Below, in pieces: positions 6,507 through 46,697 of a stretch of DNA of 64,000 nucleotides. Each line of letters opens with the position of its first letter. The first letter of the stretch is position 1. The notes under the pieces are model-generated. The model saw nothing but the letters and a program-made list of their open reading frames with translations, made no database searches and was not told the DNA's origin. The stretch is taken from NCBI GenBank assembly GCA_037447605.1, contig CM074807.1, positions 3,422,829 through 3,486,828 of the forward strand. The letters run 5' to 3'. Source of the DNA: Zygnema circumcarinatum SAG 698-1b. Taxonomy: Eukaryota > Plantae > Zygnematophyceae. The translations under genes were made by a program, and so were the position numbers.

Positions 6507-9500
6507 CTACACTTTCTCCTCACCCCCCACATTCACTTTTTTCCCTTCTGCTTCCCGCCTATCTCCCTCCACCTCCACTCCCTCGGCCTTCTCTCCGTCT
6601 CCTTCTCCGCTACCTCTACTTTCACTCCCTTCCTCCCTCTCCACTACCTCCACCTTCACTCCCTCCTCCGCCTTCTCTCCCTCCTCCCTCTCCACTCCCT
6701 CCACCTTCAAATCCTCCTCCATCCTCCCTACCTCCTGAACCTTCTCTCCCTCCTCCCTCTCTACTCCCTCCACCACTCCTTTCTCCACCACTCCCTCCTC
6801 CACCTTCACTCCCTCCTCCATCTTGCCTACCTCCTGAACTTTCTCTCCCTCCTCCCTCACTACTCCCTCCACCACTCCCTTCTCCACCACTCCCCCATCC
6901 ACCTTCCCTCCCTCCTCCACCTTCTCTCCCTCCTCCACCTTCACTCCCTCCCCCTTCCCTCCCTCCCTCCCCTCCGCTCCCTCCCCCCCCTCCTTCTCCC
7001 TCTCCTTCTCCCTCTCCTTCCCCCCCTCCTTCTCCCTCTCCTTGGGCACAAGTCCCAACACTTCCATCATCACGGGGTCATACCGCCTCTCTCTCGCGTT
7101 CTCCGGAACTCTCTCCTGCCGCGACTCCCAAAACTTTAACTTCTCTCTCTGCAGCCCTCTCTTAAATTCAAGCATCGCTTCAAACTGCTTCTTCCGAAAG
7201 CTCTGCCATCTCTCCTCCTGCTCCTTTTCGTACCTCCCCCACTCCAAGGCGAGATCATTTCCCTCTTTCAGAGACACTTCATACACTCGCAGCTCTTCCT
7301 CAAGCTCCTCTTCGTCTCTCCTGCCAACAAAAATGACAAATTCAACGCTTTGGGGGCTACATAAACCGAAATTCTTGCAAGGTTTGCTGAACAGCAGCTA
7401 TCTTTCAGTCACAAATAACTTCATAAAAGATGTCTGTATCGAAAAATAAAGACAACGCAACACTCCCTGGTCTCCGATGAAGCTCACCCCTTCTACCCCT
7501 CACACTTTCCCTCTCTCCCTTTCCTCCGCTTTGCATACCTGCTTTGCTCCTCCTTCGGCATGGGATTTCTCGCTCCGTCTCTCCCTCCTCCTGTGGTCGT
7601 ATGGGAGAAGGAGTTTCTCTGCATCCTCGCTTTCCTCCTCACCTCCTCCAGCTTCAGTTCAAGCTTCTTCTCCATCTCACGCTTCACTTGGTCAATCTTC
7701 TTCTTCGTCTCCTCCTCCGAGTACTTCATTTGCTCTTCGAAAATCAGTTCCATCTCCTTGACCTGAACCACCCGGAAAACCTCAAAACATTAAATCTCCA
7801 TGCACACCCCTTTCATCCTCCGCTATCCACTCATCACCCTCCCTCTTCCCCTTTTTCCCTCCCTCCCTCTCTCCCTCCCTCCCTCCCGCCCTCCCCTCCA
7901 CTCACCTCCTTCTCCTTCTCCCTCTTATGTTTCGAAAATTTGTCTCGCACTGCCTTCAGCTCCTCCGCTTTCCCCTGAAGCTTCTTCGACAACTTCTGAA
8001 TGTGATTTTCCACATTCATACTCTGCTCCTTGAGCTGCTCATTTTCCGCATTCATAACATGAAGGTTCAGCTGAAGGTGGCGGGCTCTCTCCGCATCCAA
8101 CTGGGCCTGCTGCATGGGGATCTCTACTACCTCCTTCCACTTGCAGAGAAGGGCCTTAACAGCAGACTTGCCTGCGGGTGAGAAAAGAAAACAGAGCAGG
8201 AGGAGGAGGTGGTGGAGGAGGATGAGGAAGGGTAAGATGAGGATGAGGATGGAACTGTAGGATCGAAGGTATAGAAAGGGTTGCTTGGTACCTCTCTCTA
8301 CCTCCTCCCTTTCAACCCTCCCCCCTCCCCCNNNNNNNNNNCTCCCCCTCACCCAAGTGGGTGTTGAAATCCTCCAGGTCGTCCAGCGTGGCCAGCCATC
8401 CGTGCAGGAGCCTCTTCCCGTCCGCCCCCACTTGCCCCCCCGGACCCCTCCGCAGCCACGAGTTGCGCCCTCTGTTCTCTTCGTTGAAGAGCACACTCAG
8501 CCGCACTGCCTCGTTGTAGCCCTCATAGCGGGGCTCGAATATGAGGAGGGAGAGGCCGCGGTGGCCCTACAAAGGACGGGAAAAGGAAAGGAATTCGAGC
8601 AAAGTTTGGGGGGGGCATAAGGGGATTTGGGCTTGTGTTTTTCGCGTTTGTGGGGTTCGTTTTGTGTGCAAGAGTTGGACGAGAGTGTGGGTTTGTGAGG
8701 TTTTGGGGGGTTTTAGGTGTACCTCTGGGCCGTATGCATGCTTTCGTCGCTGTATGTGTTTGAAGGACTTGAAAGTGTCTTTAAGCTCCTCGTTGCCCAT
8801 TCCAATCCACTGTTCGCACCAGAAAATAAAGAACGAAAGAAATATATATTAAGGGAGATGGCGGGCTAGAGATGGGACGGGGACAAAAACAATGGGAGAA
8901 AGAAAGAGAGAGAGGGTGGGGGAGAGGGAGGGAATGAAAAGGAGAGCGAAAGTGGGGGCGGGAGGGGAAAGAGTGGGAGAAGGCGAGCGCAGGGAAGGGA
9001 TGTGAGCGAGGGCGCGAAAGGGAAGGGTAGAGGGGGGAGGAGCACGAAGGGAGAGAGAGAGAGAGAGAGAGAGAGGCGAACCTTATCCCCGTCCTGGTAC
9101 AAGCGTGTGTTGACCACCATCACAATGGGAGGCCAAACCACCACCTTCTCTCTCTCTTTGGGTGCTTGCTCCCCCGGAGCACTCCACCGGCCTTGTGGCT
9201 CAGAGCTGAGGATGGTCAATCCCCTCCTCTCCAGCACTGCCTTCAAATCCACAGCCAACTCTCTGTGCTCCCTCGCCCTCCTCTTCTTAAAAGTGGAAGC
9301 GTGGAGGGCGAGGGCAGAGAGGCCTGTATACCATTGGGTCTCTCCCCGCCCTCCTAAACACACCTTACATTTCCATTCCTTCCCCACCTCGTCTGCCAAC
9401 TCGTTCTTAGTATAAACGGACTCCAACTCCATCAGAAACTCCGACACCGCTTTGCTGTGCTTGCCCGAGGCTCTCCTTTCCGCTGCCACACTCGCCGAAT

Positions 9501-11511
9501 CAATGTCCAAATCCTCATCGCTATCAAACCCTAAATGATCGTCCTCGTCGTCTTCGTCGTCACTCAGAACTCGGCCCACGCTCTCTCTCTCTCCGTCTTC
9601 CTCCTCTCCTCCAGCTTCCTCCTCTCCGTTCCCTCTCTCGCTCCTTTCCCCCGAAGGCCTTGCTGAGCTCAAACTCTCGACCTCCAAGGGGTCGAATTCA
9701 CTCACCCATTTTCCCGTTCTAGCAGATTTCTCCGTGTCCCATAGAACTGTGGTTCCTGCAGATGCCAATCCGTGGGCCGATTCCTCTATGTAGGATTCCG
9801 TAGACTGATATTCTGACTTCTCTTCCCATGCATTATTTTGTTTACTAATCCTGTTGGTGTTCTTGTTCCCTCCCTTCTTTCCTCTCCCAGTTTTTGTCTC
9901 CCAAACCCCCTCCTCCAACCCCTCTCCCTCTGCTCTCGCATACTTGGGCTCCCACCCAGGGCCTCCTCTGGGAACAGGAAGCTCAAGACTGCCCCCACTG
10001 CTAACTGAACGGCTATCTGCCTCCATAGCTGCGCGGTTTCCAGCAGGAAAAGACTTGCTATTAGGAATAGCTGGCCAGCTGCCTTCCGCGGAGACTTTCC
10101 CTCCAGACCCAAAGCTCCCGACGGGAGAAACACTTTCTCTCCCTCTCCCTCTGCCTCTCCCTCTTCCCGCTTCTCTCTCCCTCTCCGTCTTTCCAGCCTC
10201 CCCCCATCCATCCTTCGCTTCGTTGCCAGCCCATGGATTGGCTGCAGGCTCTTTACCTTTCCTCCCTCTTCCACTCCCTTGGCCCTCCTCCTTTACCAGT
10301 GCTGAACCCCGGCCTCTCCCTCCCTTACCCCCCCAATGGGAGGGAGGGGGAACAAGGGGCTTAACCCCGAAATCCTCTGAAGATAAGCTGCCCTCCCCAT
10401 CTGTTCCCCAATAATTCCTCCAGCTCGCTTCTGCCTGAGATCGTGGCATCCCCCAGGTTCCCTTCTCCAACGGCCTCCCGTTTGACGGAACGGGCTCTGC
10501 GGGAAGTCGCATAGAACCCCCTGGTTGCGTGGCAGGGCCATTCCCTCCCGTTGAATGCGTTCCATGTGGTGGAACTTTTTGAATTTTTTTCTCCGGTGCC
10601 TCTCTCCAAAAGCCCCATCCCTCTCCACCGCTGCTGGCCAGAGTGCTCGAACCTGAATTCATGGAAACATGCGGCTCGGTTTTAGGGTTTGGTTCGCCCC
10701 ACCCCCTCGCGATTCCGGCGGACCTTTGAACGGGATTATGGGCAGAGCTTTGGACGGAATTAGAAGCGGAGTTTGGAACAAAATCATAAGCCGAGTTCTG
10801 AACGGAATCTTGAGCAGAAATATGAGGAAAAGCTTCCACATTCATTGCTGCCTCAAGAGGAGCATCCTCCCATCCAGTGATTTCCCCCCACCCGTTCTTC
10901 ACCGGAACTTTCCCGGGCGGCCATGTGCTCCTTTCCTCTGCCTCAGCACTCCAAGCACCCCCCACTTCAGGAGCAGCAGCAGCAGGAGGAGCAGGCGGAG
11001 GAGGAGGAGGAGGAGGGAGAGAGGGAGGGAGAGGAGGGCGAGGGGGCCCTGAGCCCCCGTCCTCCCACTCCTTCCCAAAGGATGGCAGCTCTATGTCCGA
11101 CCGCGAGGCGCTGTCCCTTTCCCCATGCGCCAGCCCCTTCCCGTAGTCGATGCTCTCTCCGCTGTCGGACACCACGCTGCCCCAATGGTGCTTTCTGGTC
11201 GGCTCCATGGCCATGGCCACGCGGGACGCCCCCCATCCGGAAGCCCATGCATCCGCCCCGCCCTGGCCGAGGCCCTGGCTGGCACCTGCAGGAGGAGGCG
11301 GAAGGGGAGAGGGAGAGGGAGAGGGGGGAGGGAGAGGGTAGCCATGGAGGCTTCCTCCAGCTCCAGCTCCACCTCCCCATCCCCCTCCCTTTCCCAAACC
11401 TGCTCCTGCAGCTGCTTTTGCAGATCCTGCTCCTGCATTTGATCCTCCTGCTCCTCGTCCCTTACCTTTTTTTCCCTTACCTTTCGCATTTCTAGGAGGA
11501 ACTGAAGCCAT
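6507..11511 (-). CDS. SGS3: SUPPRESSOR OF GENE SILENCING 3-like (IDR + zf-XS + XS + coiled coil), ~1344 aa
   Basis: Exons 11511-9082, 8809-8723, 8566-8353, 8171-7906, 7762-7539 and 7320-6507 join in frame (4035 nt). zf-XS: [28 protein letters not shown]...HRELA. XS: [70 protein letters not shown] coiled coil follows. Confidence 0.92.
8332..8341. other. Assembly gap (10 N) inside an SGS3 intron
   Basis: Run of n; the flanking exons stay in frame across it. Confidence 0.99.
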
Positions 11512-11574
11512 GGACGCTGGATGGGGCAGCCGGAAAGGAGGCAAGAGCGAGAGGAGAGGGAGAGTGGGGGAAGG

Positions 11575-11701
<127 letters not shown>

Positions 11702-12015
11702 GTGGGAGAGGGAGTGAGGAGGGCGCCTCTCCCTCTTGAGAGGGAGCTGCAGCTTTCACACAGGAGCTCCCAAATCTTGAAGTGAAGAAATTCGGCCTCT
11801 TGCAACGTGGCAACAAGTTCAGCAAACCATATATATCTTCTTGCCACGTGGCGTGTTCTCATTGGAGAAAACAAATTAGCCCCATTTTTTCTGAAGCCCC
11901 TTTGTCGGTTTCGAACCGGCGTCACACCTGCGGCCGGTGTGCAACTCGTGGTTTCGAAGCGGAATCGGGAAATTTGGGCCCTTGTTTTATTCCGTACAAT
12001 TTTTTTTTTTTTAGG

Positions 12016-12163
12016 TAAATGCTACCCACACACCTTTTTTTAGACTAGATACACACTTTTTTTCACCGGTCAAATTTTATTTTCGGGTTTTTATGGTATT
12101 GGGAATTTTTTTTTGGTAAGGTGTATCTAGATTCTAGACAAACAAGGTGTGTAATAGTATTTA
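12016..12163. repeat. Degenerate inverted repeat (~150 bp), possible old MITE
   Basis: CTAGATACAC (12045-54) pairs with GTGTATCTAG (12121-30). ACACACCTT pairs with AAGGTGTGT. TAAATGCTA pairs imperfectly with TAGTATTTA. Confidence 0.5.
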
Positions 12164-12737
12164 GTAATTCATTTTTTTTTTTTTTTGTGTACTACTGTTC
12201 CCATTTCTCTCAACCAAACAGACCTTGTCTAGGAGCAGCGTGCGCAGGCACGCTGCTCTGAGTTCCTCCAAGGATTTGAATTTGACTTCAAGTGGGTCTA
12301 CAGGACTGGAAGGCTGAACGTGGCAGATCCATTGAGCAAACAACCTCGGCATCTTGCCTGGATGATGCACTCGTCAACTCAAGTGTTGGTGAAAAGAAAT
12401 GATAGAGATGAGGGGTCGGCCAACCCTGATTTTCCGTCTCCAGTATGCTTTGTCATAGATCCCTCCACCAGTGACGCAATCAACCCTCCTGCTCTCTCTC
12501 TCTCTCTCAAGCTTTCTTGCTGAACTTGTATTTACCCGTACAGCTGAAGGAGGAGCTTGCCAACTGTTACATTTGGTAATCAGGCCCCAGGCCAAAACTG
12601 TCCAATCGCGTATGGGAGAATTCGAACACGTGACCTCCGACCCCGGGGGGGAGGCATCAAGCGTGCCGCCACGTCGGATGGCGCTTCCAGGTTCAAATCA
12701 CCATTTCGGGTCTACGTGGTCACCGCCAATTCGCTAA

Positions 12738-13080
12738 GGGTGGGGGTCCATCAGCGTTTTTTCGCCGACGTGGAGGTACAGGCGTAGTTTTGGAGGATGA
12801 TGTGGCGCCGTCGTGGCGCCGACTAGGACCGACGTGGAGGTACAGGCGTAGTTCCCCAGAAACCTCAGGAGGTGAGTTCTGGGGAACTACGCCTAAGTTT
12901 TCCAATCGTGCGCCGCCGCGTGGCGTTGAAGATCCGTTCGAGACGCCACGGGGGTGCGGCGGCCACGCTGATTGGCGTCCGCTGATTGGCTCGCGCGACC
13001 TCTGATGGAACCCGCAATTCTCCCTTCATGACTCATGATCCGATGTGGCGGTACAGGCAAACGCTGATGGACCCCCACCC
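12738..13080. mobile_element. Tourist-type (PIF/Harbinger) MITE, 343 bp
   Basis: Perfect 22-bp TIRs GGGTGGGGGTCCATCAGCGTTT / AAACGCTGATGGACCCCCACCC, flanked on both sides by TAA (12735-37 and 13081-83). No coding capacity. Confidence 0.88.
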
Positions 13081-13808: not shown

Positions 13809-16800
13809 TTACACGTATCCCATCGCCTTCTTGTACGCGACCTGGTCCTGCAAAGTCAGCCGGTCTTCTGTCCAGTTGCCGCTGCTTGTTCGCTTTCGGA
13901 AGTTGCGTTTCTTTCTCTGTCCTGTGATCTCCGTGAACACTGCCAGACCCAAAATGCAATGAGCTGTATAGGTCAGATAAAACGATTGAACGGAGCGTTT
14001 TTGTAAAAGATTCACATAAAAAAGGAAGCTTCAGCTTATACTAACCTGTACTAACAGACGCAGAGCCTAGGAGAGCACGAAGAGGGGACTGAGATTATTG
14101 GAGGTGCTCTGCTCACCTTCATTGAGGTTGCAGGTTTTGACGCCGTCAAATATCTCATCGGGATCGATGGCTGCTTGTGCAATCACATGCGGCATGAGAT
14201 ACCTTTCCCTGTTCCCGCATGCAGTCAAACCCAAACAGAGAGTCAAAACCTTCAACAATAGCTAGAAAGGAGTCCATTTCAGGTCAGCCCTGCTTCAGAC
14301 AAACTTGTCAGATAACAATGTACACCCCCAAGCTCCTTACATCAACATTGGCATGCTGACTTCTGGAGTAACGTTAAGGCCCTGATCTGTTTAGCAACCC
14401 CTCTTGATTTTCAAACAGAGACCAAAAAGTCCCCCCATATTGACTTACTTTGTCCAAAGCGGGCACGGCTTCGTCGGTCTCCTGTCCATTTCCTCGTCCT
14501 CATCATCATCTTCATCGTCAGAGTCCCGGTAAGGCGAAATCTCGTAGTTTACAGGCCCTCCTTTTGGGACTGCAACCGGCTCTTGAACTATTGGGGTCGC
14601 TTTCAAAGTCTGCAGACCAGACTCTCCTGAACCTCCCATGCTGGTCTGTGTGCTTTTGACCCCCCCTGCCTTCATAGCGGCCAATAGAGAAGACTTGTCA
14701 GCTGATCCAAAAGGGACTTTTGTCTTCAGATCTGCCTCCTTCTCCATTGCGATTGACCCCTCCTCCGTAGTCTTCTTTTTCACAGCAGCATTGCTTAGCC
14801 ACCCTCCAGGGCCAACCACAAGGTTCGATCCAATAGTGCCCCCCCCAATGCGCTCTGTAGACTTAAAGCTACGTTCCTTTGAAAGGTCGATGAACTTGCC
14901 AGCTTTGACTTCGATAGCTTTGTGGGTTTCTTCCAAAGTAGGGTTTCCCATCAACGATGCAATTGGACGCTCCTTATACAAGGCAGTGGGTGACCTTCCG
15001 GTTGCTCTCAACCCCCCACGTAATGCACCAGCATTCTCAGCTGATAAGGACAATTCTGCAAGAGCAGAATATCCCCTTCCCACTACTACCCCCTTAAGAG
15101 AGGAGGGCTCACACATACCCGTCCCACCACTCACAACGTTCTTTCCAACCGCATGCTGCAATCCCTGCTGTGGTAGGAAAGAGGAAGAAGAAGCTCCTGA
15201 TTTGCCTGCATTCCCTAAGCTTCCTGTCACTTTAACTCCGGGAGCTACAGGAGCCCCACCCAATGCATATTTCCAAATGGGGCTGCCTTGAGAACTGTCT
15301 CTCTGAGTTAAGAGGGAGCGAGAGCTGCTTGCAGCTCGAATTGTGCCTAAAGGAGCACCCAGAAGGCTGGTAGTAGTTGGGATTTGACTATAGGGATTTT
15401 GAGCTGCAGAAAGGGCAGCCTCTCCTAGGCGAGCCTGCATAGAAGACCACCAGACAGTGAATTTACATACGGGGGACTGAACATTAAGACGGGAGACTTA
15501 GCTACACATCTCCTTTATGCACTCAAGTAAACACCTATTTTTCGTAAAAGTGAGGGGTACACTTTGCTGGTAAAAAATGCAGTAGCTAAAGCTTCCCCTT
15601 TTTGTAAGCAGCAGATGTTGCCGTCTCCAGGCAAAAGGAAGAGGAATCTGTCTGTTGCTTCTTTATTTAGGATTCGCCCTTCCATGTTGAAAATGTACCC
15701 AGAGAGGCTACTGAAATACTTCCAGCTCCAAAGCAGCTCTTGCAGAGTGATCAAGAATGTATTCAAAGTTTTTTAGTAGTGATGCCCAATCACTCACCCG
15801 CCTTTCTCCTTCAAAGCGCTTTTTTTCGTCGTCTTCCCATTCCTTCCTTTTCTGAAAGAGCTCTTCCTTCACCTTTGCCTTCTCGACCACTTTTGCCGCT
15901 TTTGCCTCCTCCTCCTCCCTCCTCCTCCGTTCTATGTCTCTCTCACGCTCCATCCGCTTGTGCCGTTTATGTTCGTCCTCTGCAGCCTTCCTCTCTCTCT
16001 CCGCCTCTTCCTGTGCTTGCATTTGCACCCAATTTTCGTATCAGTTTCAGAGCTCAAATAGCTTATAACTAGAACCTCGATAATGTCCAATCAGTCTGAA
16101 TTCATAACGTGACTCTATGGTTCAAAAAACTTTGAACTGAAGCATGGGAGTGTGAGAAGGCGTGGCTTGAATATTCTTGAATATTCAGTGACAGCAATCA
16201 GTGAACAGCAAGAAAGGTGGGCTCTCTCTTTCTCATCTTGCTATGCTTGAAACTCATGCAGAACGCAGTGAAGGGGTGTACCATACAATACAGAAGTATG
16301 TGAGCACACTCTATGTCCTCAACAGGCCAGGATGAAATTTCTGTAACGGAGAACCAAAATCCGAAGCTTTTGCCTATTCCTATCTCGACTTATGATGTCA
16401 AAGCATTTGTAAAACTTGACCTCATAATCATGAGGAGAAAGGAAAAAGCAAACTTACAGCAGCCTTTCTTCTCCTCTCCTTCTCCTCCAACTCCGCTCGT
16501 TGCCTCTCCGCCTGCCGTTCTGTCTCACCCCTCTTGGCCCTCACCACCTCTTCCCTCTGCCGCTTCCTTCCTGCTAACTCTTCTTCTTTCCTCTTCTTCT
16601 CTTCTTCCTTCAACTTCTTTTCCTCCTCCATCTTCTTCGTCTTTTCCATATCCATCTTCGGCTTTGAAGCCGCCTTTCTCTGCCTCAGCACTCGGCCTGC
16701 CTGCCCAGTCAAAGCTGTTTGACTCTCATCAAATGCTTTAAATCCTGCACCATATCCTCCAGACTCTAATGAATCTAACTGTAACATGCGATCATTGCTG

Positions 16801-19800
16801 AGGTGGGGTCTTACAATAGTTCTCCTTCCGTCCTCCTCCCCCTTTTCCTTTGATAGTTCCCACACATTATGCTCACTTTCCGTTTCCTTTTCCAATTCTC
16901 TTTCCTTATGCTTCTCACCGACTCTCTCTCGGGCTCGCTCCATTTCCTGCTCCCTCTGCCTCTCCTTCTCCTCCTTTGCCTTCTCCATAGCAACTCTTCT
17001 CTGTTTCCTTTCTTCGGCCTTTCGTTCCTGTTCTTTACGAGCTGCCTCAGCTGCCTCCAAAGCGCGTACTTTCACCCCTTTCTTTCCTGCAATCCGAGCC
17101 AAAGAGTGGTCAAATTCGGAAGACTTAAAAAATTCAAGTGAATCTTTTACCTGCATGATCTGTTACATCGCTCTGTTTCCAAAATCTAACTCTATAGAAT
17201 GTGGTCATTCACAGTCTTCTGCTTCAACCGGAGACAATAGTCTATGATCTGCTAAACATAGCCCAGTCCAAGTAAAAATTGCCTTTCTTTATTCAATCAG
17301 ACTCTGATACAAGTCAAGCCATTGAAACAAGTCTGCCTTCCATAGATCAATATCATTTCCATCTTGTAACTGGACAGTAAAAAGGCACAAACCTGCGGCA
17401 GGTGGTAGTGGAGGCGGAGGCTTCTTCATAAGGGCTGCGAATGACATCACAGAAGTGCAAATATTCGGACAGGATTCCGTTTTGATTTCAATTTTCCCAA
17501 TTGCATTCTCGACCTGAGTCTCACTGCCTGCTTGCTTTTCATTTTCCCCATCCTCTCCTTCTTCCAGCACTCTTGCTGATGGGTTTTCTTGAACCTCTTC
17601 CACTTCCAAAGGCTGCTTCTGCTCAGCATTCAAGACATTCGAACCACATTCGAAAGTTTCCTTCTCAAACTGCTTTTCCAGTTCGAGCTTCCTTCCACTA
17701 AGAAGAGGTGAAACCTGCTCTGCCAGGTTTGGCAGCTTTCTCGCAGAAAGGCTTTTGAGATATCCAAATACAGCAGCAACTCCCCTAACAACACTCATTT
17801 GTCTTGGGCTTGGAGTAGTCGTAGCTGCTACCATCCTGACTATGGTCTGATTTGAAATCGGGGTGCCTGCACTTGGCCCATTTAATTTCTCACCCACTTC
17901 AACTTGTGGGCCAATTTCCTCACCGGCTTCAACTGACCTGAAGGGAAGTGCGACATCGTAGTTTAATTCTGCTTCCTTTCCTTCATTCTGCAAGTTAGCA
18001 TCCTCCTTCCTCATTCCTAGAGCTCTTTCCTGTATATCCGAAGAAGCTGTTAGCTGAAAGTTCTCATGGAATTCACCAATATTGCCATTTTCCTTTACCT
18101 CCACAGCATCGTCGTCGTCCTCTGACTCTGCCACATCGTCCTCCTCCTCTACCTCCTCCTCCTCCTCTTCCTCTTCTTCCTCCTCCTCTTCACCTTCCTC
18201 CTCTTCCTCCTCGTCCTCCTCCTCCTCCTCCACCATATACACCTTCTCGACCGTGCTCCCTTGTTTCTCAACTCTTGCTTCACCCTCTCCTACTGCTGTT
18301 CCCCCTGTCCTGCTTATTTCCCCCTGCACAGGGCTCAGAATCGAACTCCTTGGCACGCTTTCAGGTTCGTGTTGACCTTCAAATGGTGGGATCACAGAAA
18401 GTACAGCATCATGGTTGAATGCTAGATCCTCTCCCACTTTCTGCAGGTTGAGATCATCCTGCCTAAGTTCTAAAAGTCTGAAGAAATCGGTCGAAGTTGT
18501 TTGCTGAAGGTGCCGAACATAATCACTCTTGCTGACGCTTTCGTTTGCTTTCAAAAAGCTTTGTTCCTCCTCCCTCTCCGACTCTCCTACCTCCTCCACA
18601 TCCTCGTCGTCCACTTCGTTCTTCTTCTTCTCCCTCTCCTCCTCACCCTCCTCATCCACTTTCTCCTCCCTCTGCACTTCTTCCTCTCTCTCCACCTCCT
18701 CCTTTCTGATGCTTTCGTTTGCATTCAAAAAGCTTTGTCCCTCCTCCCTCCCAGACTCTCCTACCTCCTCCACCACTTCTTCTTCCTCCATCTCCTCCTC
18801 ACCCTCCGCATCCACTTTCTCCTCTCTCTTCACTTCTTCCTCTATCTCCACCTCCTCCTTTCTGACGCTTTCTTTTGCATTCAAAAAGCTTTGTCCCTCC
18901 TCCCTCCCAGACTCTCCTACCTCCTCCACCACTTCTTCTTCCTCCGTCTCCTCCTCACCCTCCTCATCCACTTTCTCCTCTCTCTTCACCCTCTTCCACT
19001 CTCCTCTCTTCACTTCTTCCTCTCTCTCTACCTCCTCCTTTCTGACGCTTTCTATTGCATTCAAAAAGCTTTGTCCCTCCTCCCTCCCAGACTCTCCTAC
19101 CTCCTCCACCACTTCTTCCTCCTCCGTCTCCTCCTCACCCTCCTCATCCACTTTCTCGTCTCTCTTCACTTCTTCCTCTCTCTCCACCTCCTTTCTGACA
19201 CTTTGTTTTGCTTGCAAAAAGCTTTGTTCCTCCTCCCTCTCCGACTCTCCTACCACCTGCACATCCTCGTCGTCCACTTCTACCTCCTTCCTCTCCTCCT
19301 CACCATCCTCATCCACTTTCTCCTCACTCTTCACTTCTTCCTCTCTCGCCACCTCCTCCCTCGTCTCATCCTCAACCATCCTCCACTGTTCGTCAACTCT
19401 TGCTTGTTCTTCTCCATCTGCTGTCCCTCTCCTGCTCTCATTCCCCTGGCTCAAAGTCGAGCTGCCTGCAAGACTTTCAGGCTCCTCAAGGCCTCTTGAT
19501 TCTAATTTCTCTCCTTCCTTCTTCTGCATGTCGAAGTCCTCGTCCCTAGGCTCTAAGGCCACTTTTTCTATGTTCCGAGGAGCTATTGGCTCTAGATGTT
19601 CACCTAACTCCGAGATGTTTTTACCATCTTTGACCTCCCGAAGTCCTATTTCATCTATCGTCTGGGATACTTCTACCTCTTCCTTTTTGTCCTCCTCGTC
19701 ATCTTTCTCTGCTCTCTCCTCTTTCTCCTCTCTCGCCTCCTCCTCCTTCCCACTGAAAACAACCTTCACAGAAACAGCCGAAGAATGGTTGCCCTTTTTC

Positions 19801-21158
19801 CCTCTCGTCTGCCTTGTCGATTTATTTGTCAGAGGAGGTACTGCTGGTGTATCTTTAATATCATGTCCTCGTGCCCGAGCCCTAGTCACGCGCGACCCCT
19901 TTCTGACCTTTGACCCGGACATTTCTGCGAAATCTGAGAAACCTACTGATGGAACTGCTAACCTGTCGGTTGCAGGTGTCGACAGGTGGAGTACATTTTG
20001 GACTGTTTCCTGTCTCATATCAATGTCTTCCGTCTGCACTGCCACCTCCACTTTCTGGGAGGAAAGGTCCTCCTGCAGCATCGGAGCATCACCTTTCGCC
20101 GTCCTATTTGGCTCCTCCACCACCATCTTCGCTACTTCAATTGGACCTTCTTTCTCCTCTCTACTTGCATGCGAGCTTTCTGCCAACGAATGCGAGTTGG
20201 GGTCTTCTGCCGCTGCTGACACTTGCCCGTCTGTCCTGAAACATGTTTTAGGCTGGACACCAATTTTTAAAGTACTACAATTAGCAAAAGGGCTGCATAC
20301 GCTATGCTTAGTACGGTCCAGTGATTGGGTCCCAATGCCTTTCTGGTGAGGCTTGACGCCCGATTCACCTCTAGCTGGTGTGCATCTAATCAGCGGTATC
20401 ACATTCTCTTTGTTCTGACTATCCCAAACAAGCTGCCTTATTACCTTGCCACTTGTGGAAGGGGCTTCAGGTCCTCCTTCCCTCTTTCCTGTTTGCTGCT
20501 GAACACTAGGGGCACGGATAGACTTCATGGCAACAACATTGGAACTAGGAGTTTCAGTCGCAGTCTTAATCAGACTGGGATCTGGATCCAAGGGATGCAA
20601 CCGAGCACGTTTTGTCTTATGGAATCCCGACTCACCGGCTCCACTACTGCTAAAATTCTTCTCAGTTCCAAAGTTCGCTGTGCACTTTTGAGCCCAAGTG
20701 AATATGACTTGCAGATGCTCATCGCTAGCTTCTTTGCCCAGCTGTACATGTAGCCTCAATTTTTCCTGCAGATGTCATTCAGAAGTGAACTTAGAATGGG
20801 AGTGAGAGCTGTATTGAAAAAAAAATCGAAATCATGTCCAGTGCAGGCTAACTTCAACTGATCCCAAAGAGCAAATCGCTGTGTGGATCAATACAGGTCA
20901 AATGTAGCCTATCAAATCAAATACGCTCTTCTGTCAATATGGTGAAATAAATTCTGGTATATTGTTTGACAAAAAAAGCCGAAGAAATAGACCGGAAAGG
21001 CAAGTCTACTACATACTTTTCGAAAAGAAACAATGTACTGGAACCTGAAGTTTCGAACCAAACGGCAATCATCCTGTGGCGTGACAGACTAGGAACCGGT
21101 AACTCACCAAAATACCATTCATGCAGTTCAGTTCTCCAATCTTGTAGTATTCCGCCAT
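13809..21158 (-). CDS. INCENP: Inner centromere protein (INCENP / WYRD-like), chromosomal passenger complex scaffold
   Basis: Probable ATG at 21158 (in-frame TAA upstream). Large exon ~20765-17393. Plant WYR-like KGVKVRALEAAEAARK plus charged single-alpha-helix exons. IN-box is split over the last exons: YEISPYRDSDDEDDD..KPCPLWTK / QAAIDPDEIFDGVKTCNLNE / VF..FRKRTSSGNWTEDRLTLQDQVAYKKAMGYV*. Confidence 0.88.
18530..19360 (-). repeat. Coding tandem repeat, five ~52-aa acidic units in INCENP
   Basis: Unit EEVEREEEVKREEKVDEEGEEE..VVEEVGESGREEGQSFLNA.ESVRK; QSFL occurs 5 times. Confidence 0.9.
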
Positions 21159-22369
21159 CTTGAACTGAAGGTGCTTGAGTTACTTTGCTTTACAGGCTAG
21201 TAAGCACAATATTCAGCACGTTCGTGCGTTCTTCTTCCTTGTTCAATGAGCAGAAAGTCGTTTGAACTTCAAATCTACCTATAACCTATTCCCGCGCCCA
21301 CTTACCTCCACACCTCCTTCAAGAAATGTTCCTTACCTCTGCTTCACCTCCTCACACCTCCTACATTCCAGCAAACCTCTCTCAAAGTGCACCCTCCTCT
21401 AAAGAAACTCCTGCAGAACCACCATTCCAGTCCACAATACCCCCCTTCCTGCAACCAGAGACCCCCCTACGCTCCTCCCCTCAGGCCCTAGTCCTGCCAT
21501 TAACCCCCCAATCAAGGCGTTGGGAGATAATCCATGGCGCCTGTGAGGGATATACAGATCAATATATGAAGAAAGACTTTACGAGCCTTTGCTTATTCTG
21601 TTCCTTTACTTATTTCTTATGATTAATCGAATGCAGGGAAAAGAGGCCCTGCAGGAGCAGGAGCAGGAGCAGGAGCGGCCGTTGCAGGATTTGAACGCGG
21701 GCGCGCTCCCTCCTAGCCGTTGGGACGCCCCCGCAGGAGGGACGGCCGGCACATGTGAAAGTTCAGTTCCGCGTTCAGTTCCCGTTTGGACGGGGAAGTA
21801 GGCGCATGTGAAGGGGTTTGTGATTCGGCGATTCCAAAATTCGAATTATGAACGTCCGCCGTAGTTTTGGAGGACTATATACCCCCCCCCCCCTTTGGTT
21901 ACCCCGCCCCTGTTTTTTGGAAAGCCAACTATAGGTCCGTATGTATCAAACGCGTGTATAATACGTCGTATACTGTAATACGTGCGTATTATACGACATT
22001 TTAAAATACAGTGTATTTTAAATATATTTAACGTCTTTTCTTTCGTTTTCTTGCTAATTAGACAGAGATTGATTATAATAATTGAAGCTTCAAATCGTAA
22101 GGCAGCTCTAGGACACCTTATACTAGTCTCAAAATAGTTGTTTTGAAAATTAGATCCACAAGAGCAATTTCAGGAGGGACGGTGATGATGGGACATGTGG
22201 TAGTGCTGCTACAATGGTGAAGGCATCATGAGAAGGATAAGCGATGAAGAGCAACAACAAAATGATGATGAAAACTCTTTATGCACACAACAAAAAAAAG
22301 CCACACCGTTTTTCTTCTTCTATTATTTATAATAATCACACCCAAAGAAGACAAGTGATGGGACAAGTG

Positions 22370-22572
22370 ACATCCTCTTATGCATCCGGTGCATCATCCC
22401 ATACATCCTTTACATCATCCCATGCATCCCATGCATCATCCCATGCATCATCCCATGCATCATCCTATCCATCATCCCATACATCATCCCATGCATCCCG
22501 TTAAATCATCCGATGCATCATCCCATGCATCCCGTGCATCATCCCATGCATTTTGTGCATCATCTGATGCAT
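22370..22572. repeat. CATCCCATGCAT-type 12-bp minisatellite (copy 1)
   Basis: Degenerate tandem units of catcccatgcat / catcccatacat. Confidence 0.9.
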
Positions 22573-23999
22573 CACCGCACCAATCACGTCATGGTATAAA
22601 AGCAGTTTTGTTTTTTTTTTAACTTGAAACGACGACGAATTGGTTGTTACACAAAGGTGCAAAATCTCACACAAAAAAATTTAGTACAATTGTAAAACTT
22701 GGTAAATATCCATGTACAATGAAGGGCTGTATGATTGATCGTACAATAGAACGTCTGCTTTGTACAAAAGACTATACGACTAGTTGTACACTTGTACATT
22801 ATGCGTCTGCCAAGCCTAATAAACGTGCAACAACCTTTAACACATATCTAAGGCGACCTTATGTCACATAACGCCTTGCTACCAACTGGCTCTACTCATT
22901 CTTTACACTAGTAAAAGGTTCGACAAAGGGAGTTGAAGGGCATTGGCAAACTCCTAGACCTTGCTAGAAACCAACATACAAAGAATTAAGGCAAAGGGGT
23001 CAAGGAGCCTTTAATTACATCCTAAGTATCCATTCACTCACTATCCTTCATAGCCTTTTTACACAAACAAACACAAAAGTCAACCCCTTATAAAGCAACC
23101 TTCTCTAAATACCCATGACTACATGATGTGACACCATTGTATCATAACCATTCATACAAAGACATACAGTTTAGCTAAACAATATACAAAAACTATAAAC
23201 TGATTCAGTTTTTTTGTCAATTGTTCAACCTTTAACCATGCACCATCACATGTATAATTTTGTAAAGCTAGACTCACCATCAACCTAGCTTGTACTAATC
23301 GTATTACTTGCCTTGACACTTGCGCTGTCTAATTTGTCATTGACTTTTAGCCAAAGTGGTAACAATATTGGCAATATTGTTTAATCAACTCTACACTAAC
23401 AATGTCTGATTGCACACTTACATTCTAACTTTGTGCTGATATTTTTTGCTTTGCATGCTACCACATGTTTACTAACATCCAAATTGCTCCATACAATCTA
23501 GCATTGTAACTATATTATTGCTTGCTTTTTTGTATTGCCAGACACTCTTTGCCATACACTATTTATGGACCCATTTGTATTGTGCACACTCCACGCACCC
23601 TGTAATGACTTTGTACAATCGCCAACAAAATTTTCCATATCCTAGGAATGCTATGACCACACCCTGTTACACAAGTTGAATGACAGCGTACCCGTATTGA
23701 GTAAGTAGCAAAGTAGCCTTGTTGTTGCTGCACATAAGATAACAAAAAAAAATTCACAAATATATTATTAGATATTTTTTATAGTTTAATAAATTTTCAA
23801 ATCTTTTAAACTTTGCACATTGTTATACAAACTGAAGAATATTATTGAACTTTATAATTAGTAATTACTTTAAACATAAAATTATATAAATTTATTTTCA
23901 TTTAGTCTATTTAAAATATTACTAAAAAATTCACATTTTAAATTTCAATGCTATATTTAGTAGAGTTTTATTGTATAAAAAGAAAAGAATCTCACCTTA

Positions 24000-26900
24000 T
24001 CAATTTTTTTTCGAAGAAGACTTCATGTTTGCCAGTACATCAACAACTAGCCATGGAAAGCTGATCAATAATCCCGAATGCAACCCATTTAAGCTAATTC
24101 CAGCTCCTCCTTTATCATCCTCATCTTCATTTTCGATTTCATTTTCCTTTCCAAGCCAATCGGGATGATAAGTCACATAATACCACGCTGAAGCAACAAC
24201 CTTCATCATTGTTGTAAATTTTCCAAACGTCCACCATTTTGACGAACGTTGATCAAAAGATGTTTCCTTATTGTTTTCATTGTTTTCATTGTTTTCATGT
24301 TCATCATCTTTGTAGTTGCTCGCAATACACCCGCTTTGAACCAAAAAAGCATGGCGATACTCACGCCGTATGATAGAATATGCGAGGTTGACTTTTTCTT
24401 TAGAAGATCCTTGATTCTTTTGATAAAACCGTGACATATGGATGATTTGCCCAGTTACCAATTCCCCTTCAGTCGTTATTCCATACTGTCCCACAAAAAC
24501 AAGAATCACAATAAAAAAATATAGTCAAAATAATCAGCGATCACAATCAAAACGATTTAAACAATGTAAAAATATGTTTTTTTCACAAACAAATGTGCAA
24601 ATTTGTATTCAAGTCTACACATTCACCTACGAAGAAGTTTATCTAACCTCATGGTTTTACTTTTTACCTCCGTTGGTTGCATTTATCTTGGGAAGTGGCC
24701 ATTTAACATCTTTTTATAAACAAAATCGGGCAATTCATCATATTGAATTATGATCAAAGACCTTGATGTTAGCATACCAATCCGGAACACTTGTTTCATT
24801 AAATCCACAAGTTTCACATAATGCAATAAGCTTAGTGTATAGCCCATGATGAGATAGAACAAAGTAACAACTAAGATACATGGTTTAAACTAATGAAGAA
24901 GAACCATACCAACAACTGTTGCATTCAATAATTGTTTGAAAAGGCGGCCATGGCTGCCGCAGAGGAAGGAGAGGAGGAGAAGGAGAGGCAGGGGGGAGGG
25001 AAGAGAGGGAGAGGGAGAGAGAGAGGGGAGAGGGAAGAGAGGGAGGAGAGGGTAACACAATCATCTTGGCAGAAACAAAAAAAGGCAGCCCGCCTAGTCC
25101 AACCCCAAAAGAGAAGGAGGCTGGTATGAAATACCTGGTACATAAGCAGGCGGATGGCAGTTGTATATTCCCGCTTGATCTTGAAGGCTTGCTCAAGATG
25201 CTGCTCATAACCAGCCACGATCAAATCAGAATCAAACGACGACGCAATTGTCTTGCTTGCAAGGAGCCACTCGTTGGTCACTCCTCGTGGTTCCTTTTTC
25301 TGGGCCCCAATCGAAGCCACATTGGCTGCTTCTTCACTGGTCACCTTGCCCTTCACTCGTCGATACAACTCTCCAAGTACTTTCTTTGAAGTGTAGGTTT
25401 TGCCCTCGTCCTTTTCCATGAAATCAGGATATTCAGAAACTTTCAGATCTGGGGGCATCACACCCGGAATGCCCGTCTTTGGAAAGTCAAAAGCAACAGA
25501 TGCTTGCTTGGCCAACTCCAAGCATTTGGGATCACGGGCGCCAAGACTGCTCCTGTCTGCATGCACCACATGCGCATTGCAGATGATCCCCACATTATCG
25601 TTCAGCATCTGCTCCACAAAGTTCTCTTGAAGATCCTGCAGTTTGCCCATTTTGAAGCCCACAATAAACTTCAGTAAGTTGAACGTTAAATATCAACCAT
25701 TGGCTTTTCCATTGTTCTAAAGTACCCACGCAAATACTAGTAGTGATTTCCTGACAAGACGAACAAGGATATCCATTGCAAGATAGTATGTCTCTAATGC
25801 AAGGCAATCGGCGAGTTGAGATTGGGTAAGGGACGGTTATAACACATAATCCATGGCAGATAGCCCGTTCCCTCTAACAAAGATTTTAGGAGATGGGATA
25901 TATTTTTGTGATTCAAACGGCAACAAATTCTTCCCTAATTATGATCCACTAAAAACAAAGGAAAGAAAGAAGATGTCGCTCCCTCCCACTCTTCCAACAG
26001 ATCCTTTTGAGATTCACAAGCGTCACAGGCATAGCTTCTTTCCCGGCACAAAAATGAGAATGCATGAGTAAAGTCTTCAGAATTCCAAAAACACAATGCA
26101 AACTCCCCTTGCATCTCCATCAACCAATCGACCCCTTCTAATCGAGCAGCAACCCACCACTGAGAAGTCAAGATATGACGGAACCCAAGATCCCTTTCCA
26201 CTGAAGCATAAAACTAATGAAAAAAACACATGAGAGTGTTCAAATGAGAGTAGTTCAATCACACACATTTAACTTCACGTCCTCTTGCAACTTCGCCTGA
26301 TTGGCTGTATACTCCATGGGCTCTGCGCTTTCCCCCCCCGGGTGAAGGAGCTCTACATCCCAATGTACGAAGTACATATCCCCATCGAAGTCGCTCCCAG
26401 AAGCTTCATTTGCATGCGAGCGAGGGCCCTTGATAGGTAGCACAAGGCAGTCCTTTAAGTGCTGCAATTCTGGCCTGTCTACAGCTTGAAGGAATCGGAG
26501 GTCTCCGGGATGAAGGCAGGGATTCTTCCCAAAGCAAATGGGTCCTGTGATAACTCGTGGAGAGGATGCTGAGTCTATTCCCTCGCTCGTTTTCATGCTC
26601 CAATCCCCTTCAGATTCCGGACCAGACACTTGAATGAAACACTCCCCATACTGACAATCAATGGCAACATCAAACACCACGTTTCAGCTCAAAATTTTCA
26701 ACCAGTTTTCAGCTTTCGACCATCATGTCATGGCCAGACAGCAAAATGCAGTTGCCAATGTCGTACTCATTATGTCTTTCTCGACAGTTCTGATATGCTG
26801 CTACTCATAGTCCCCTGGTGCCTTTTCCTGTCTTCAGCTCAGAAAATATTGTAGACTACTACACCACCTCTTCCAAACAACAGGACACATGCAGGTTTAC

Positions 26901-29746
26901 TTTTCTTCTGTTTATTTGTGCTTACCTCTAAGGTGCCGCTTTCATCGATAACCCCCATCAACCATCGGCCTTTAGGAATATAGATTCGTGCTTTTGCGAT
27001 GAGATCTTGCAGCTGTGAAGCCCTGTCCTCACATTCGACAAAAAAAATAGTCAAAGCTGACATGAAGCAACAAGATTAACTCAGAAAATCTTAGGGCACA
27101 AATGGCCTGAACCTCAGGACGTTTCGGTTCAGTTTCAGTTTCAGAATTTTCTTCCCTTTCTTTTCAGTTTAACAACAAGGTTATTGATTGATTTCTTTAT
27201 GAAATCGAGCTTCTGTCCCTCGAACTCACCGGATAGCTTGCATCATGTGAAGCAGATGGGGTTCAGTCTGTGGATGGAAACCTCCTTGGAGCATCATAAC
27301 AGCAGGAGAATAAGGTTCTTCAATGCATGCCAGAAGCAAATGAAGAGCAGCCTCCTCGTCTACTAACGCTCTATCCAAATGGGCCACCATTTTCTCCTGC
27401 ATATCCAAAAAACACCACAAGAAAAACAGTCAGCAGCTTACGACATGAACTTTCTAGTTCTTCCCCTTCTTGCTTCCTATTCTAAGAAAACATGGCCTTC
27501 TATTCCTGGAAACAAGACTTACCTGTCTTTCTATGAAGACATGGTCAGGCACACCCAACGTTGAGAGGAGGACGATGATCTGTCGGTTGAGATAACAAGG
27601 CTGAAACTTTGTCCAATTGATCACCTCCAAATCGCAATGTGGAGAAGGAAACTTCTCCATACTGGGCCTGAAAAACAGCTTCTTTTGGCTCCCCTCCTGA
27701 GCAGCCCACTGTGCCAAAACCCCCTTATAGCCTGCATAGCGAATCTGGAAGGCCGAGGGGGGTTTTTCGCTTCCTGTAAAAGGGTTCAGGAAAGTAACAA
27801 GCCCCTCTGCCAACTCCTCTGCGAATTGGGGCGTAATTTGTCCAATTCCATCGGAAAACAACTCATTTCCGCGCTTGATTTCTTCGATGACTTCCACATC
27901 CGATCTGGGAACATGTTTTCTATGTACGGTAGAGGAGAAGCATTGCCCCATGCGAGCCTGATACTTGGCTGTGTTCTTTATTCTGCTGAAATCTCCCAAC
28001 CAAGAACGAATCTCCTTCACCGTGAGATTGGAGCCAATTTCGGACCCTCCCTCCCCAAAAAACCACGCGGACTTGTTTCGGAGCTGGCTTGAACTGCAGG
28101 CCAAATATTCGAACCGCCGTCCGCAAAATTCAAATCCCTGCAGGATTGGAAAGGAGGGGTACTGATTCAATGAAGAGGAAGCATACATAGTGCAGAATGC
28201 TGGAAATGGAACTTATAAAAAGGAATGGCTGAAATCACACTTCTGAAAGGGTCAGATGCACTTGAGAGAATTGTAGTAAGCTTACACATTTGACAATGTT
28301 CAGGATGCGATCATAGACTGTCGTACGGCCTTCCATTCTCCTATATTCCTTTCCCATTGATCCTTGTGTCAGCAATGCGAAGGATTGGAGATCATGCATA
28401 GCTTCATCCGTAAACGTAACTCTCACAAAGCTGTCGATGTGGTCCTTATAATGTCGGAGAACTCTATTAGAGAGGTCGTATTCCGGCGGCAGAGCATATG
28501 CAGTCAAAGGAGTTATGATAATACGTTTGACCAAAACGTGGTTTTCAGTGACCCACTTGGGGGAAGGGGATGGTGAGGGGGATGGGGAGGGGGAGGAGGA
28601 GGGGGAGGGGTGAGGGGGAGGGGGAACCCCTTTTGTGAACTTTGATTTTGCAATTCTTCCCATCTCCAGCTCAATTCTGTTCGTTGGCTTAAAGGCTGGA
28701 TAGTGGTAGTGAAGCATTTTTCTCAAGGCAATGCAAGAGATGTCCGGATCACTCTTTGCCAAGAGCTGAAGCAAATTGTTATCAACAGTTGTGCATGGAA
28801 CTATGCCCCTCAACACGAGCGAGTTGAGAAGGAACAAGACATTGAATGGGATCTTGTTTGAAGCGGCGACTCTTTTCGAAAATGTAAGAAGGCTTTTGTT
28901 TCTTCCACCCCATTTTGGCATATGCAATGGTTCGAAGTCGAGCTCCCCTGTTGGCCTCCATCCTGTGTTCCATGTGTACTTGCTGAAGGCCTTCAAAACA
29001 TCGACAACTGTTCTCTGACGAAAGACTGATACTGCAAGACAATAAAGCGTACACAACCCAATAAGTCCATCTTTTGTAAAGTCTACTGTCCTCGACCAGG
29101 GATCTTCATTATCCACACTCCAGGAGTACATAACGTCGTCCTTCCAAACATCATCGTCTGCTTGCCTTTCATATATATGAGGAGCAACCCCAACTTCAAA
29201 GAAGACCCTAATGATAAGCCTCTCGGTGAAATGCCGAGATTGCCAGCATGCCTTTATGTTCCGGAGAAGAAATTCCAGTTTGTAATCCTTGGATTCCTTT
29301 TCCCCCCGCTGTTGCACGACTATGCAGAGCTTCTTATTATCAAAATCGAATCCGACGGTTGCATTCTTCTCCGATTGCCACCCACAAGAGAAAGTTTGGA
29401 ACCCAGAGAGAATGCCACATTGAACAGTTACATTCTCCAAAACATGGGGGGTTCGAGGTTGAAGTTTTCCCATGCGAACTTTCAGTTTGGACCCATTGAA
29501 CTCCAAGGAGCCATTCCTGGCTAAATCAACCGCATATAAAGCCTGCCTTTCGTTCAAAAGCAGGACGAAAGCAGGACCGGCATGCTGCCAGGGTGCCTTG
29601 TTTTTCTTGAAAACTCCTTTCAGTTTGCACCATAGAACTGTGCAACCTTCCTGCACGAAGATCTCGACGAGTTTCTTTGCTGACGTCAATCCAGCAGCAA
29701 TATCTGTCACACACACAGAACATGGTAGCTGTTCTGTCTCTGACAT
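24000..29746 (-). CDS. RDR6: RNA-dependent RNA polymerase, RDR6-like (alpha clade), catalytic motif DFDGD
   Basis: Approximate exons 29746-28286, 28137-27523, ~27400-27229, ~27025-26926, ~26660-26271, ~25635-25135 and 24485-24000. RDR6-type motifs: EDPWSRTVDFT, ITPLTAYALPPEYDLSNRVLRHY, KYQARMGQCFSST, FSDGIGQI, AFQIRYAGYKG, WTKFQPCYLNRQII, KNPCLHPGDLR, NEASGSDFDGDMYFVHWD, GIICNAHVVHAD, ASAWYYVTYHPDW, SFPW. Confidence 0.93.
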
Positions 29747-46208: not shown

Positions 46209-46550
46209 TTATTTGGCCTTGGATGAGAGCCATCGAGCTGCCAAATGGTCCCCATAGAGTGTGACCCGCAAGGTACTGACTTCAAGTTCAAAAACGGCGC
46301 CCTTTTTCGGAATCACTGCATAGAATCAGTGAAAAAGAAATTACTCAAAATAGAACAAACCAATCGAAACCCTCGATTTATTATCGAAAGAGAATGTAAA
46401 ATAAATCCGAGAAACTTTGCGACATAGAATCTGCAAATCCCTGAAACACCCCAACCCTGAGCACTAGGCGCCAAAACCCTCGACCTACGAAACTTCAAAT
46501 CTCCCAGTGCAGAGGGCGGAAGAGAGAGAGAGAGGGAGAGGGGGGGAGGG

Positions 46551-46631
<81 letters not shown>

Positions 46632-46652
46632 GGAACAAGAGAGAGAGAGAAC

Positions 46653-46697
<45 letters not shown>

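Follow-up and report, generated by a model that had tools for sequence, protein, structure and literature searches.

[quoted passage not shown] Is such closeness the mark of a functional gene cluster or is it incidental? We found that the genes are real and that their linkage is real as well. As for the origin of the linkage, we consider it likely that we see three ordinary, independent genes in incidental proximity and not a selected or co-regulated cluster. Both the SGS3 and RDR6 families have already been reported in streptophyte algae (PMC5907777, PMC7994812).

Arrangement and contiguity of the locus

The main features of the locus are as follows.

6507..11511, minus strand: SGS3 orthologue; six exons, 1344 codons, ATG at 11511, stop TAG at 6509-6507
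8332..8341, no strand: assembly gap of 10 N within SGS3 intron 3 (8352-8172)
~14070..20760, minus strand: INCENP-like gene with the IN-box (PF03941) in 14448-14750 and 14070-14261
17289-20759, minus strand: large acidic repeat exon of the INCENP-like gene, with tandem repeats of 156-336 nt at 18528-19359
24000..29746, minus strand: RDR6-clade RNA-dependent RNA polymerase (Pfam, tblastn, ML tree), stop at 24000-24002

The genes follow one another head to tail in the order RDR (29746-24000), INCENP-like, SGS3 (11511-6507). Between the SGS3 ATG and the RDR stop (24000) there are 12.5 kb, with the INCENP-like gene as the only gene in this interval; measured from the XS domain of SGS3, the RDR stop is 15 kb away. 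The initial annotation had named the three genes as SGS3, INCENP and RDR6-like, and had described them as co-oriented, with a spacing of about 12.5 kb and one intervening gene; the identities were borne out by Pfam, the transcripts and the tree, and the arrangement agreed with the coordinates. It had also seen no N gap between SGS3 and RDR, and the sequence from SGS3 exon 1 to RDR is indeed gap-free. The only N runs in the window are at 8332-8341 and 61747-61756. Since N letters are absent from 8342-61746, SGS3 exons 1-3, INCENP and RDR are situated on one uninterrupted contig. Simple repeats, including (CT)n, are abundant in the region, with a (CT)n repeat at 11582-11692. An Rfam scan of the entire window found no family, and the window's larger ORFs showed no other silencing domains. 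Every search used the exons singly and not a joined spliced protein model.

The intervening gene was recognized by its IN-box. In INCENP, a housekeeping gene of cell division, the IN-box is the C-terminal, Aurora-binding part. The PF03941 profile matched the exon at 14070-14261 with 23.7 bits (cutoff 22, profile positions 26-53) and the preceding exon, at 14448-14750, with 15.2 bits (profile positions 3-23), and the two matches are collinear.

The SGS3 gene and its domains

The exons of SGS3 were determined from RNA contigs and open frames.

11511-9082, minus strand: exon E1
8809-8723, minus strand: exon E2
8566-8353, minus strand: exon E3
8171-7906, minus strand: exon E4
7762-7539, minus strand: exon E5
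7320-6510, minus strand: exon E6

All six exons are open, and GT..AG borders are present in 5/5 introns. The spliced mRNA was observed in RNA contigs from runs X2, X3 and X20, that is, in three runs from three studies. For the gene start we kept the ATG at 11511, the choice of the initial annotation; the start could also be at another ATG in frame further upstream, near 11862, with RNA coverage extending to 11428. In transcripts of three runs position 8170/8171 was joined to 8352/8353, with 8171-8351 skipped (cut +1). Therefore, as the transcripts join exactly the exons that flank the N run, these exons belong to one mRNA and the SGS3 coding sequence is unaffected by the gap.

Along the protein we distinguished the following regions.

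9400..11511, minus strand: Gly/Ser/Ala/Pro-rich disordered N-terminal extension of ~700 residues (composition)
9265..9369, minus strand: zf-XS-like motif CxxC...H...H (read from the translation)
8354..9141, minus strand: XS domain (PF03468), split over the end of E1, E2 and E3 (collinear profile matches)
7906..8171, minus strand: probable coiled-coil exon E4 (weak matches to unrelated families, heptad-like by eye)
6510..7043, minus strand: Glu/Gly/Lys/Val-rich repetitive C-terminal tail (tandem repeats, translation)

The XS domain was identified most clearly in E3 (8354-8566), where PF03468 reached 40 bits (cutoff 25; E 5.4e-10) over profile positions 53-112; weaker pieces were found at the end of E1 (positions 2-20, 13.3 bits) and in E2 (positions 25-50, 13.5 bits). 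For zf-XS (PF03470) there was no Pfam match at E<=1 in the SGS3 ORFs. The layout of the zf-XS-like motif fits by eye the SGS3 sequences of Fig S5 in PMC5907777, with Spirogyra pratensis the nearest. In the ESM Atlas, the top feature matches of the exon carrying this motif were zf-XS clusters at 0.89, which we take as a lead only. A comparison of the same exon with PDB sequences gave chance matches only, and a word-indexed protein search with the zf-XS/XS region of exon 1 scored nothing at E<=0.001 or at E<=10. The weak matches of E4 to several unrelated families are probably due to a coiled-coil type of composition. No match to the XH domain (PF03469) was found in the ORFs covering E4-E6.

The description of SGS3 as atypical in the initial annotation was justified at both ends of the protein, by the long Trp-rich N-terminus and by the repetitive acidic tail. 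The N-terminus contains 24 Trp residues, 12 of them adjoining Gly, where the shuffle mean was 7.2 and at least 12 were reached in 157 of 5000 shuffles. In this part of the gene, RNA contigs cover 9083-10127, 10174-10963 and 11045-11287 with no splicing. In the tail, tandem repeats with units of 18, 51 and 99 nt occupy 6563-7043.

Structure and class of the RDR gene

A tblastn search with the full-length relative P0001 (1246 aa) aligned residues 1-1244 from 29746 down to 24015, end to end, in six homology blocks.

29746-28289, minus strand: RDR block 1
28146-27190, minus strand: RDR block 2
27024-26893, minus strand: RDR block 3
26677-26285, minus strand: RDR block 4
25635-25135, minus strand: RDR block 5
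24506-24015, minus strand: RDR block 6
26378..26392, minus strand: catalytic motif DFDGD, with the three Asp kept and Phe at the second position

From this alignment the gene appears to be intact, and in length it agrees with P0001. The Pfam RdRP profile (PF05183) was matched in five minus-strand exons (E 1.4e-62, 5.3e-34, 6.8e-26, the others weaker), with profile positions 1-61, 64-272, 328-359, 359-478 and 478-582 found in successive exons. The first exon carries RDR6_2nd (PF24577; 63 bits vs cutoff 27.5), and RBD_RDR6 was not detected in it. PH_RDR2 reached 19 bits, below its cutoff.

In the ML tree the window RDR falls into a clade of 21 rows with support 99/96, along with all named RDR6 sequences, Marchantia paleacea P0029 and Diphasiastrum P0003. 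This tree was built on one exon, the catalytic exon of 214 residues. RDR1-type sequences formed a separate clade in a quick tree, and the named matches of the closest relative of the window RDR were angiosperm RDR6 sequences, with 750-780 bits compared to 581 bits for RDR1.

The catalytic motif confirmed that RDR, too, is atypical, as the initial annotation had held: the usual motif of RDR6 is DLDGD, present in 158 of the 170 motifs of the fetched relatives, while the window RDR has DFDGD. The nearest relative of the window RDR also has DFDGD, in its mRNA, and Closterium has DMDGD. It is known that DFDGD defines the RDR-gamma class, with Arabidopsis RDR3/4/5 and tomato Ty-1/Ty-3 (PMC3610679, PMC4442973). 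The window RDR shares this motif with the gamma class, but its domain content and phylogeny are of the RDR6 type (alpha), and we rejected the gamma-class reading on these grounds; with gamma-class sequences absent from the ML tree, it is the well-supported position among RDR6 sequences that carries the rejection, rather than a comparison of the two classes side by side. With the RDR6/SGS2/SDE1/SHL2 clade the window RDR has the RdRP and RDR6_2nd domains in common, and it differs from that clade in having DFDGD instead of the DLDGD norm and in the undetected RBD_RDR6.

Origin of the linkage and comparison with known systems

The initial annotation had proposed a silencing or defence gene cluster, co-inherited or co-regulated. 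This proposal was left unsupported, though not refuted. SGS3 and RDR are separated by the unrelated INCENP-like gene and thus lack the contiguity of a functional cluster. The three genes are all read in one direction, therefore a shared divergent promoter is impossible. The 1.2 kb regions upstream of SGS3 and RDR have 6 nine-mers and 1 ten-mer in common, which does not go beyond chance (shuffle means 5.1 and 1.3, respectively). A microsynteny check across streptophyte algae and bryophytes, suggested along with the proposal, was made at five RDR loci of distant relatives, by annotation or tblastn (E<=0.1) in 10 kb flanks: no XS gene was found within 10 kb of the RDR genes of Closterium NIES-64, NIES-65, Naga37s-1, Marchantia paleacea and Chara, a weak result since the 15 kb that separate RDR stop and XS domain in Zygnema exceed the flank searched. 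With the INCENP and hydrolase exons as tblastn queries, no microsynteny was seen at the RDR loci of other species either. Because of the short flank the cluster is unsupported and not refuted. A rough a priori estimate of the chance that SGS3 and RDR fall within two gene slots of each other is 0.1-0.5 %, under the assumption of 11,000-16,000 genes, of which about 4 are of the XS and 1-4 of the RDR kind. However, the pair was picked post hoc, among many possible partner pairs and ~1200 windows, hence such a low chance is unremarkable.

A selected linkage could work by keeping matched alleles together in inheritance, or through a common chromatin domain, to the benefit of an antiviral or anti-transposon amplifier, as a two-gene module and perhaps a specialised variant. 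The known functional partnership of SGS3 and RDR6, their same orientation at 12.5 kb, the unusual features of both (the Trp-rich N-terminus, DFDGD) and the estimated chance of less than 1 % for this named pair speak for it; nonetheless, we find it unlikely given the housekeeping gene in between, the missing promoter signal in the upstream k-mers, the five other streptophyte loci and the post hoc choice of the pair. Also, in Arabidopsis SGS3 and RDR6 are unlinked, on different chromosomes. The stronger version, in which selection has maintained the linkage in zygnematophytes for a co-evolved amplifier made of a Trp/Gly-rich, possibly Argonaute-binding SGS3 and a DFDGD RDR6, we hold to be quite unlikely.

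The deviation from DLDGD could also indicate that one gene is non-functional or a redundant paralogue, for instance that RDR is silent or decaying while another RDR6 does the work. This seems improbable, as an expressed full-length relative can be aligned with RDR over its whole length in gap-free coverage, the three catalytic Asp of RDR are kept, the mRNA of the relative has DFDGD too, and SGS3 is correctly spliced in three runs of three studies. An assembly mis-join that put SGS3 and RDR on one scaffold would fit the presence of N gaps in the scaffold and the plentiful simple repeats, and contigs of the DNA runs, at just ~200-300 nt, do not reach across 20 kb; still, it is highly improbable, with the single contig extending from SGS3 exon 1 to RDR and the sole gap within the locus (8332-8341) spanned by spliced mRNA. 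The linkage is probably incidental. RDR6-clade RDR, INCENP and SGS3 would then be ordinary nuclear genes of this streptophyte alga, each transcribed independently, with SGS3 and RDR most likely its counterparts of the RNA-silencing amplifier of land plants. By homology with Arabidopsis, the most likely roles are that SGS3 would bind and stabilise cleaved or aberrant RNA via its XS domain and bring it to RDR6, which would copy it into dsRNA for Dicer to process into secondary siRNAs.

The locus provides a gene model, supported by transcripts, for an SGS3 of zygnematophyte type with double the usual length, together with an RDR6-clade enzyme whose DFDGD weakens the textbook rule equating this motif with RDR-gamma. 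Both are of use in annotation and when silencing is compared among streptophyte algae. Were the linkage conserved and co-regulated, it would mean that core RNA-silencing partners can be grouped as one module in the genomes of those algae that are most closely related to land plants, and would give a handle on the evolution of the secondary-siRNA amplifier. With a selected, co-evolved linkage, a cluster of silencing genes would be described for the first time in the plant lineage.

Functional gene clusters of plants (metabolic, tandem NLR) have related non-homologous genes within ~20 kb, as is the case here. The locus differs from them in having just two members, which are separated by an unrelated gene, and in that co-regulation and conserved linkage are unsupported. 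In comparison with known SGS3, the window protein is unusual in its ~700-residue Trp-rich, Gly/Ser/Pro-rich N-terminus, in its repetitive acidic tail and in the zf-XS-like motif, which the Pfam zf-XS profile did not score; its length is 1344 residues, compared to ~625 in Arabidopsis SGS3. On the other hand, the conserved XS motifs of known SGS3 (WPP..., W.GMGN and AYGP.GHRG) are all present in it. SGS3 of land plants and charophytes (PMC5907777: Spirogyra pratensis, Klebsormidium nitens) likewise shows the order zf-XS-like, XS, coiled-coil-like without XH, the absence of XH being the feature that separates SGS3 from IDN2/FDM. Over the motif region, the SGS3 of Spirogyra is by eye the nearest to that of the window.

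SGS3, the INCENP-like gene and their surroundings

The initial annotation had described SGS3 and an RDR6-like gene, both on the minus strand, with INCENP in between, about 12.5 kb from the SGS3 ATG to the RDR stop and no N gap between the two. We found this observation to be correct in all particulars: the SGS3 orthologue occupies 6507-11511, the INCENP-like gene about 14070-20760 and the RDR gene 24000-29746, all on the minus strand. The INCENP assignment is borne out by two halves of the IN-box (PF03941), at 14448-14750 (15.2 bits) and at 14070-14261 (23.7 bits; cutoff 22). The window has the character of eukaryotic nuclear DNA, with a GC content of about 50%, short GT..AG introns, numerous (CT)n tracts and about one gene per 6.5-7 kb; it holds only two N runs. 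The individual features are as follows.

Features in the window (coordinates, strand, description)
4480-5805, minus: alpha/beta-hydrolase ORF directly downstream of SGS3 (Abhydrolase_1, E 2e-18)
6510-7043, minus: C-terminal tail of SGS3, Glu/Gly/Lys/Val-rich units in tandem repeats of 18, 51 and 99 nt
8332-8341: 10-N gap within the third SGS3 intron
9400-11511, minus: N-terminus of SGS3, roughly 700 residues, disordered and Gly/Ser/Ala/Pro-rich by composition
17289-20759, minus: INCENP-like exon of 1156 codons with 156-336 nt tandem repeats, very acidic units and a poly-Glu run
26392-26378, minus: RDR catalytic motif DFDGD, all three Asp intact
40812-41270, plus: CS-domain exon, p23/HSP20-like co-chaperone type (PF04969, E 1.4e-9)
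46313-46966, minus: possible p29 subunit of RNase P/MRP, the match being weak and under the cutoff (22.4 bits against 27)
61747-61756: 10-N assembly gap outside the SGS3-INCENP-RDR stretch

The interval between INCENP and RDR (21000-24000) is AT-rich, with a GC fraction of 0.35 at 22-24 kb, and carries a 12-nt tandem array at 22390-22573. An ORF and an RNA family were looked for in this interval and neither was found; no Rfam family scored anywhere in the window.

Structure and domains of SGS3

Logan contigs of four sequencing runs were aligned to 7200-11550, and three of the runs (X2, X3 and X20, from three studies) behave as RNA. The contigs of these three runs skip 7320-7537, 8171-8351 and 8566-8721, each stretch being bounded by CT..AC on the plus strand, that is, by GT..AG on the minus strand. 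Additional contig pieces placed an intron between 9083 and 8810, and one 25-letter stretch carried exon 4 on to 7906. Moving the cuts to the GT..AG borders gave five introns, at 9081-8810, 8722-8567, 8352-8172, 7905-7763 and 7538-7321. The six exons are open and in consecutive phases (810 + 29 + 71 + 88 + 74 + 270 whole codons); with two split codons (Gly and Arg) they make 1344 codons, ending in a TAG stop at 6509-6507. Arabidopsis SGS3 is about half as long. Exon 1 is mostly covered by RNA contigs, without splicing, and 11511 is a plausible start codon. Just upstream, at 11544-11718, there is an extended (CT)n/(GA)n microsatellite, which probably sits in the 5' UTR or promoter. Still, the frame is open through this tract and an in-frame ATG near 11862 precedes it, so the true start is uncertain.

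The domain searches were run exon by exon, with the exons never joined into a single protein. The XS domain (PF03468) scored 40 bits in exon 3 (cutoff 25, profile 53-112), with collinear pieces in exon 2 (profile 25-50) and at the end of exon 1 (profile 2-20). Upstream of XS, in the position of zf-XS, a CxxC..H..H motif occupies 9369-9265; this region gave no Pfam zf-XS score, while the top clusters in an ESM Atlas feature search were zf-XS at 0.89, which we treat as no more than a lead. Exon 4 is coiled-coil-like and profile searches of the ORFs found no XH domain, a combination that fits SGS3 rather than IDN2/FDM. In the N-terminus, 12 of the 24 tryptophans adjoin a glycine (GW/WG), compared to a mean of 7.2 in shuffled sequences, and 157 of 5000 shuffles reached at least 12. 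This is a modest enrichment (p about 0.03); going by composition, an Argonaute hook might just possibly be present here.

Identity and clade of the RDR gene

The Pfam RdRP profile (1-582) is spanned by exons within 29746-24925, and RDR6_2nd scored 63 bits in RDR exon 1. By sequence, relatives in the PDB were of RDR2 type only. An exhaustive search with exon 1 returned a single close relative, the 1246-aa full-length sequence P0001 from an mRNA contig of SRR8128908 (44% identity), with all others at or below 122 bits. Six blocks lying between 29746 and 24015 together match residues 1-1244 of P0001, so the RDR gene looks intact. Among the named relatives of P0001, angiosperm RDR6 scored 750-780 bits compared to 581 bits for RDR1.

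The nearest genomic relatives of the window RDR are Closterium genes, in keeping with a streptophyte algal source. We built a maximum likelihood tree from the catalytic exon only (214 residues, 70 rows, 1000 ultrafast bootstraps), in which the window sequence grouped with P0001 (100/96), joined next by Closterium (99/96). This group was nested in a 21-row clade (99/96) alongside P0029 from Marchantia paleacea, one Diphasiastrum gene and all of the named RDR6 sequences; in a quick tree, the RDR1-type sequences formed a separate clade. The Closterium RDR6-type gene models are very long (1440-2217 aa) with large insertions, and hardly any other gene is annotated in the 10 kb around them.

Of 170 catalytic motifs in the fetched relatives, 158 read DLDGD and nine DMDGD, including all Closterium sequences checked; DFDGD occurred among them in P0001 only. 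DFDGD is the motif by which the RDR-gamma class is defined in the literature (PMC3610679, PMC4442973), whereas the window enzyme belongs to the RDR6 clade. With all three Asp kept, we read it as a conservative variant, not a change of class. In zygnematophytes, position 2 of the motif seems to tolerate different hydrophobic residues.

Linkage of SGS3 and RDR

In Arabidopsis, SGS3 and RDR6 are on chromosomes 5 and 3, and we found no report of their linkage in the literature searched. The initial annotation suggested that the pair may be a silencing or defence gene cluster, co-inherited or co-regulated; promoter k-mers, domains in the window and 10-kb neighbourhoods elsewhere lend this no support. 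The three genes are co-oriented, which leaves SGS3 and RDR no common divergent promoter, and their 1.2 kb upstream regions have no more 9- to 12-mers in common than shuffled sequences do. Among the remaining ORFs of the window, the larger ones contained no Argonaute, Dicer or other silencing domain. Microsynteny was assessed in 10-kb flanks, left and right, of the RDR genes of three Closterium strains (NIES-64, NIES-65 and Naga37s-1), Marchantia paleacea (RDR6 clade), Chara braunii and Calypogeia (RDR1/2 type). No neighbour within that distance had an XS domain. A tblastn search of the loci with the window XS exons gave nothing at E<=0.1, while recovering the window's own exons, and INCENP was likewise absent from the flanks. 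This test is weak, as the window XS lies 15 kb from the RDR stop, a spacing that 10-kb flanks would miss, and the compared genomes are distant. The SGS3 region had no match in word-indexed searches, so the linkage was approached from the RDR side only.

At the gene density of the window, a genome of at least about 75 Mb (1177 windows of 64 kb) would hold roughly 11,000-16,000 genes. Assuming about four XS-family loci and one to four RDR genes, we put the chance that any XS gene and any RDR gene are no more than two gene slots apart at about 0.1-0.5%, by reasoning rather than computation. Such a value would be notable for a pair named beforehand. On the other hand, this pair was spotted post hoc across about 1200 windows, with thousands of partner pairs per genome, and by the same uncomputed reasoning about one chance-adjacent pair is expected. 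Selected linkage of the two genes is unlikely. We give a similarly low probability to one partner being non-functional: the RDR motif departs from the usual form, but the RDR gene aligns almost throughout with P0001 and the SGS3 frame is open and spliced. An assembly artefact is very improbable. The stretch does contain a gap, at 8332-8341, but its flanking exons are spliced together in the mRNA, so the scaffold join is correct and the SGS3 coding sequence untouched. The closeness of SGS3 and RDR is, in our judgement, quite probably incidental linkage.

Both genes have counterparts in known systems. Charophyte SGS3-like genes with canonical motifs have been described, including Klebsormidium nitens GAQ92898 and that of Spirogyra pratensis (PMC5907777). 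By eye, the motif region of the window aligns with published bryophyte and charophyte SGS3 and looks closest to the Spirogyra sequence (Fig S5, PMC5907777). The RDR6 clade has been traced as far back as streptophyte algae (PMC7994812), and Marchantia paleacea is reported to have an RDR6 orthologue (PMC4476159). The SGS3 and RDR of the window are new members of these known families, with some variant features.
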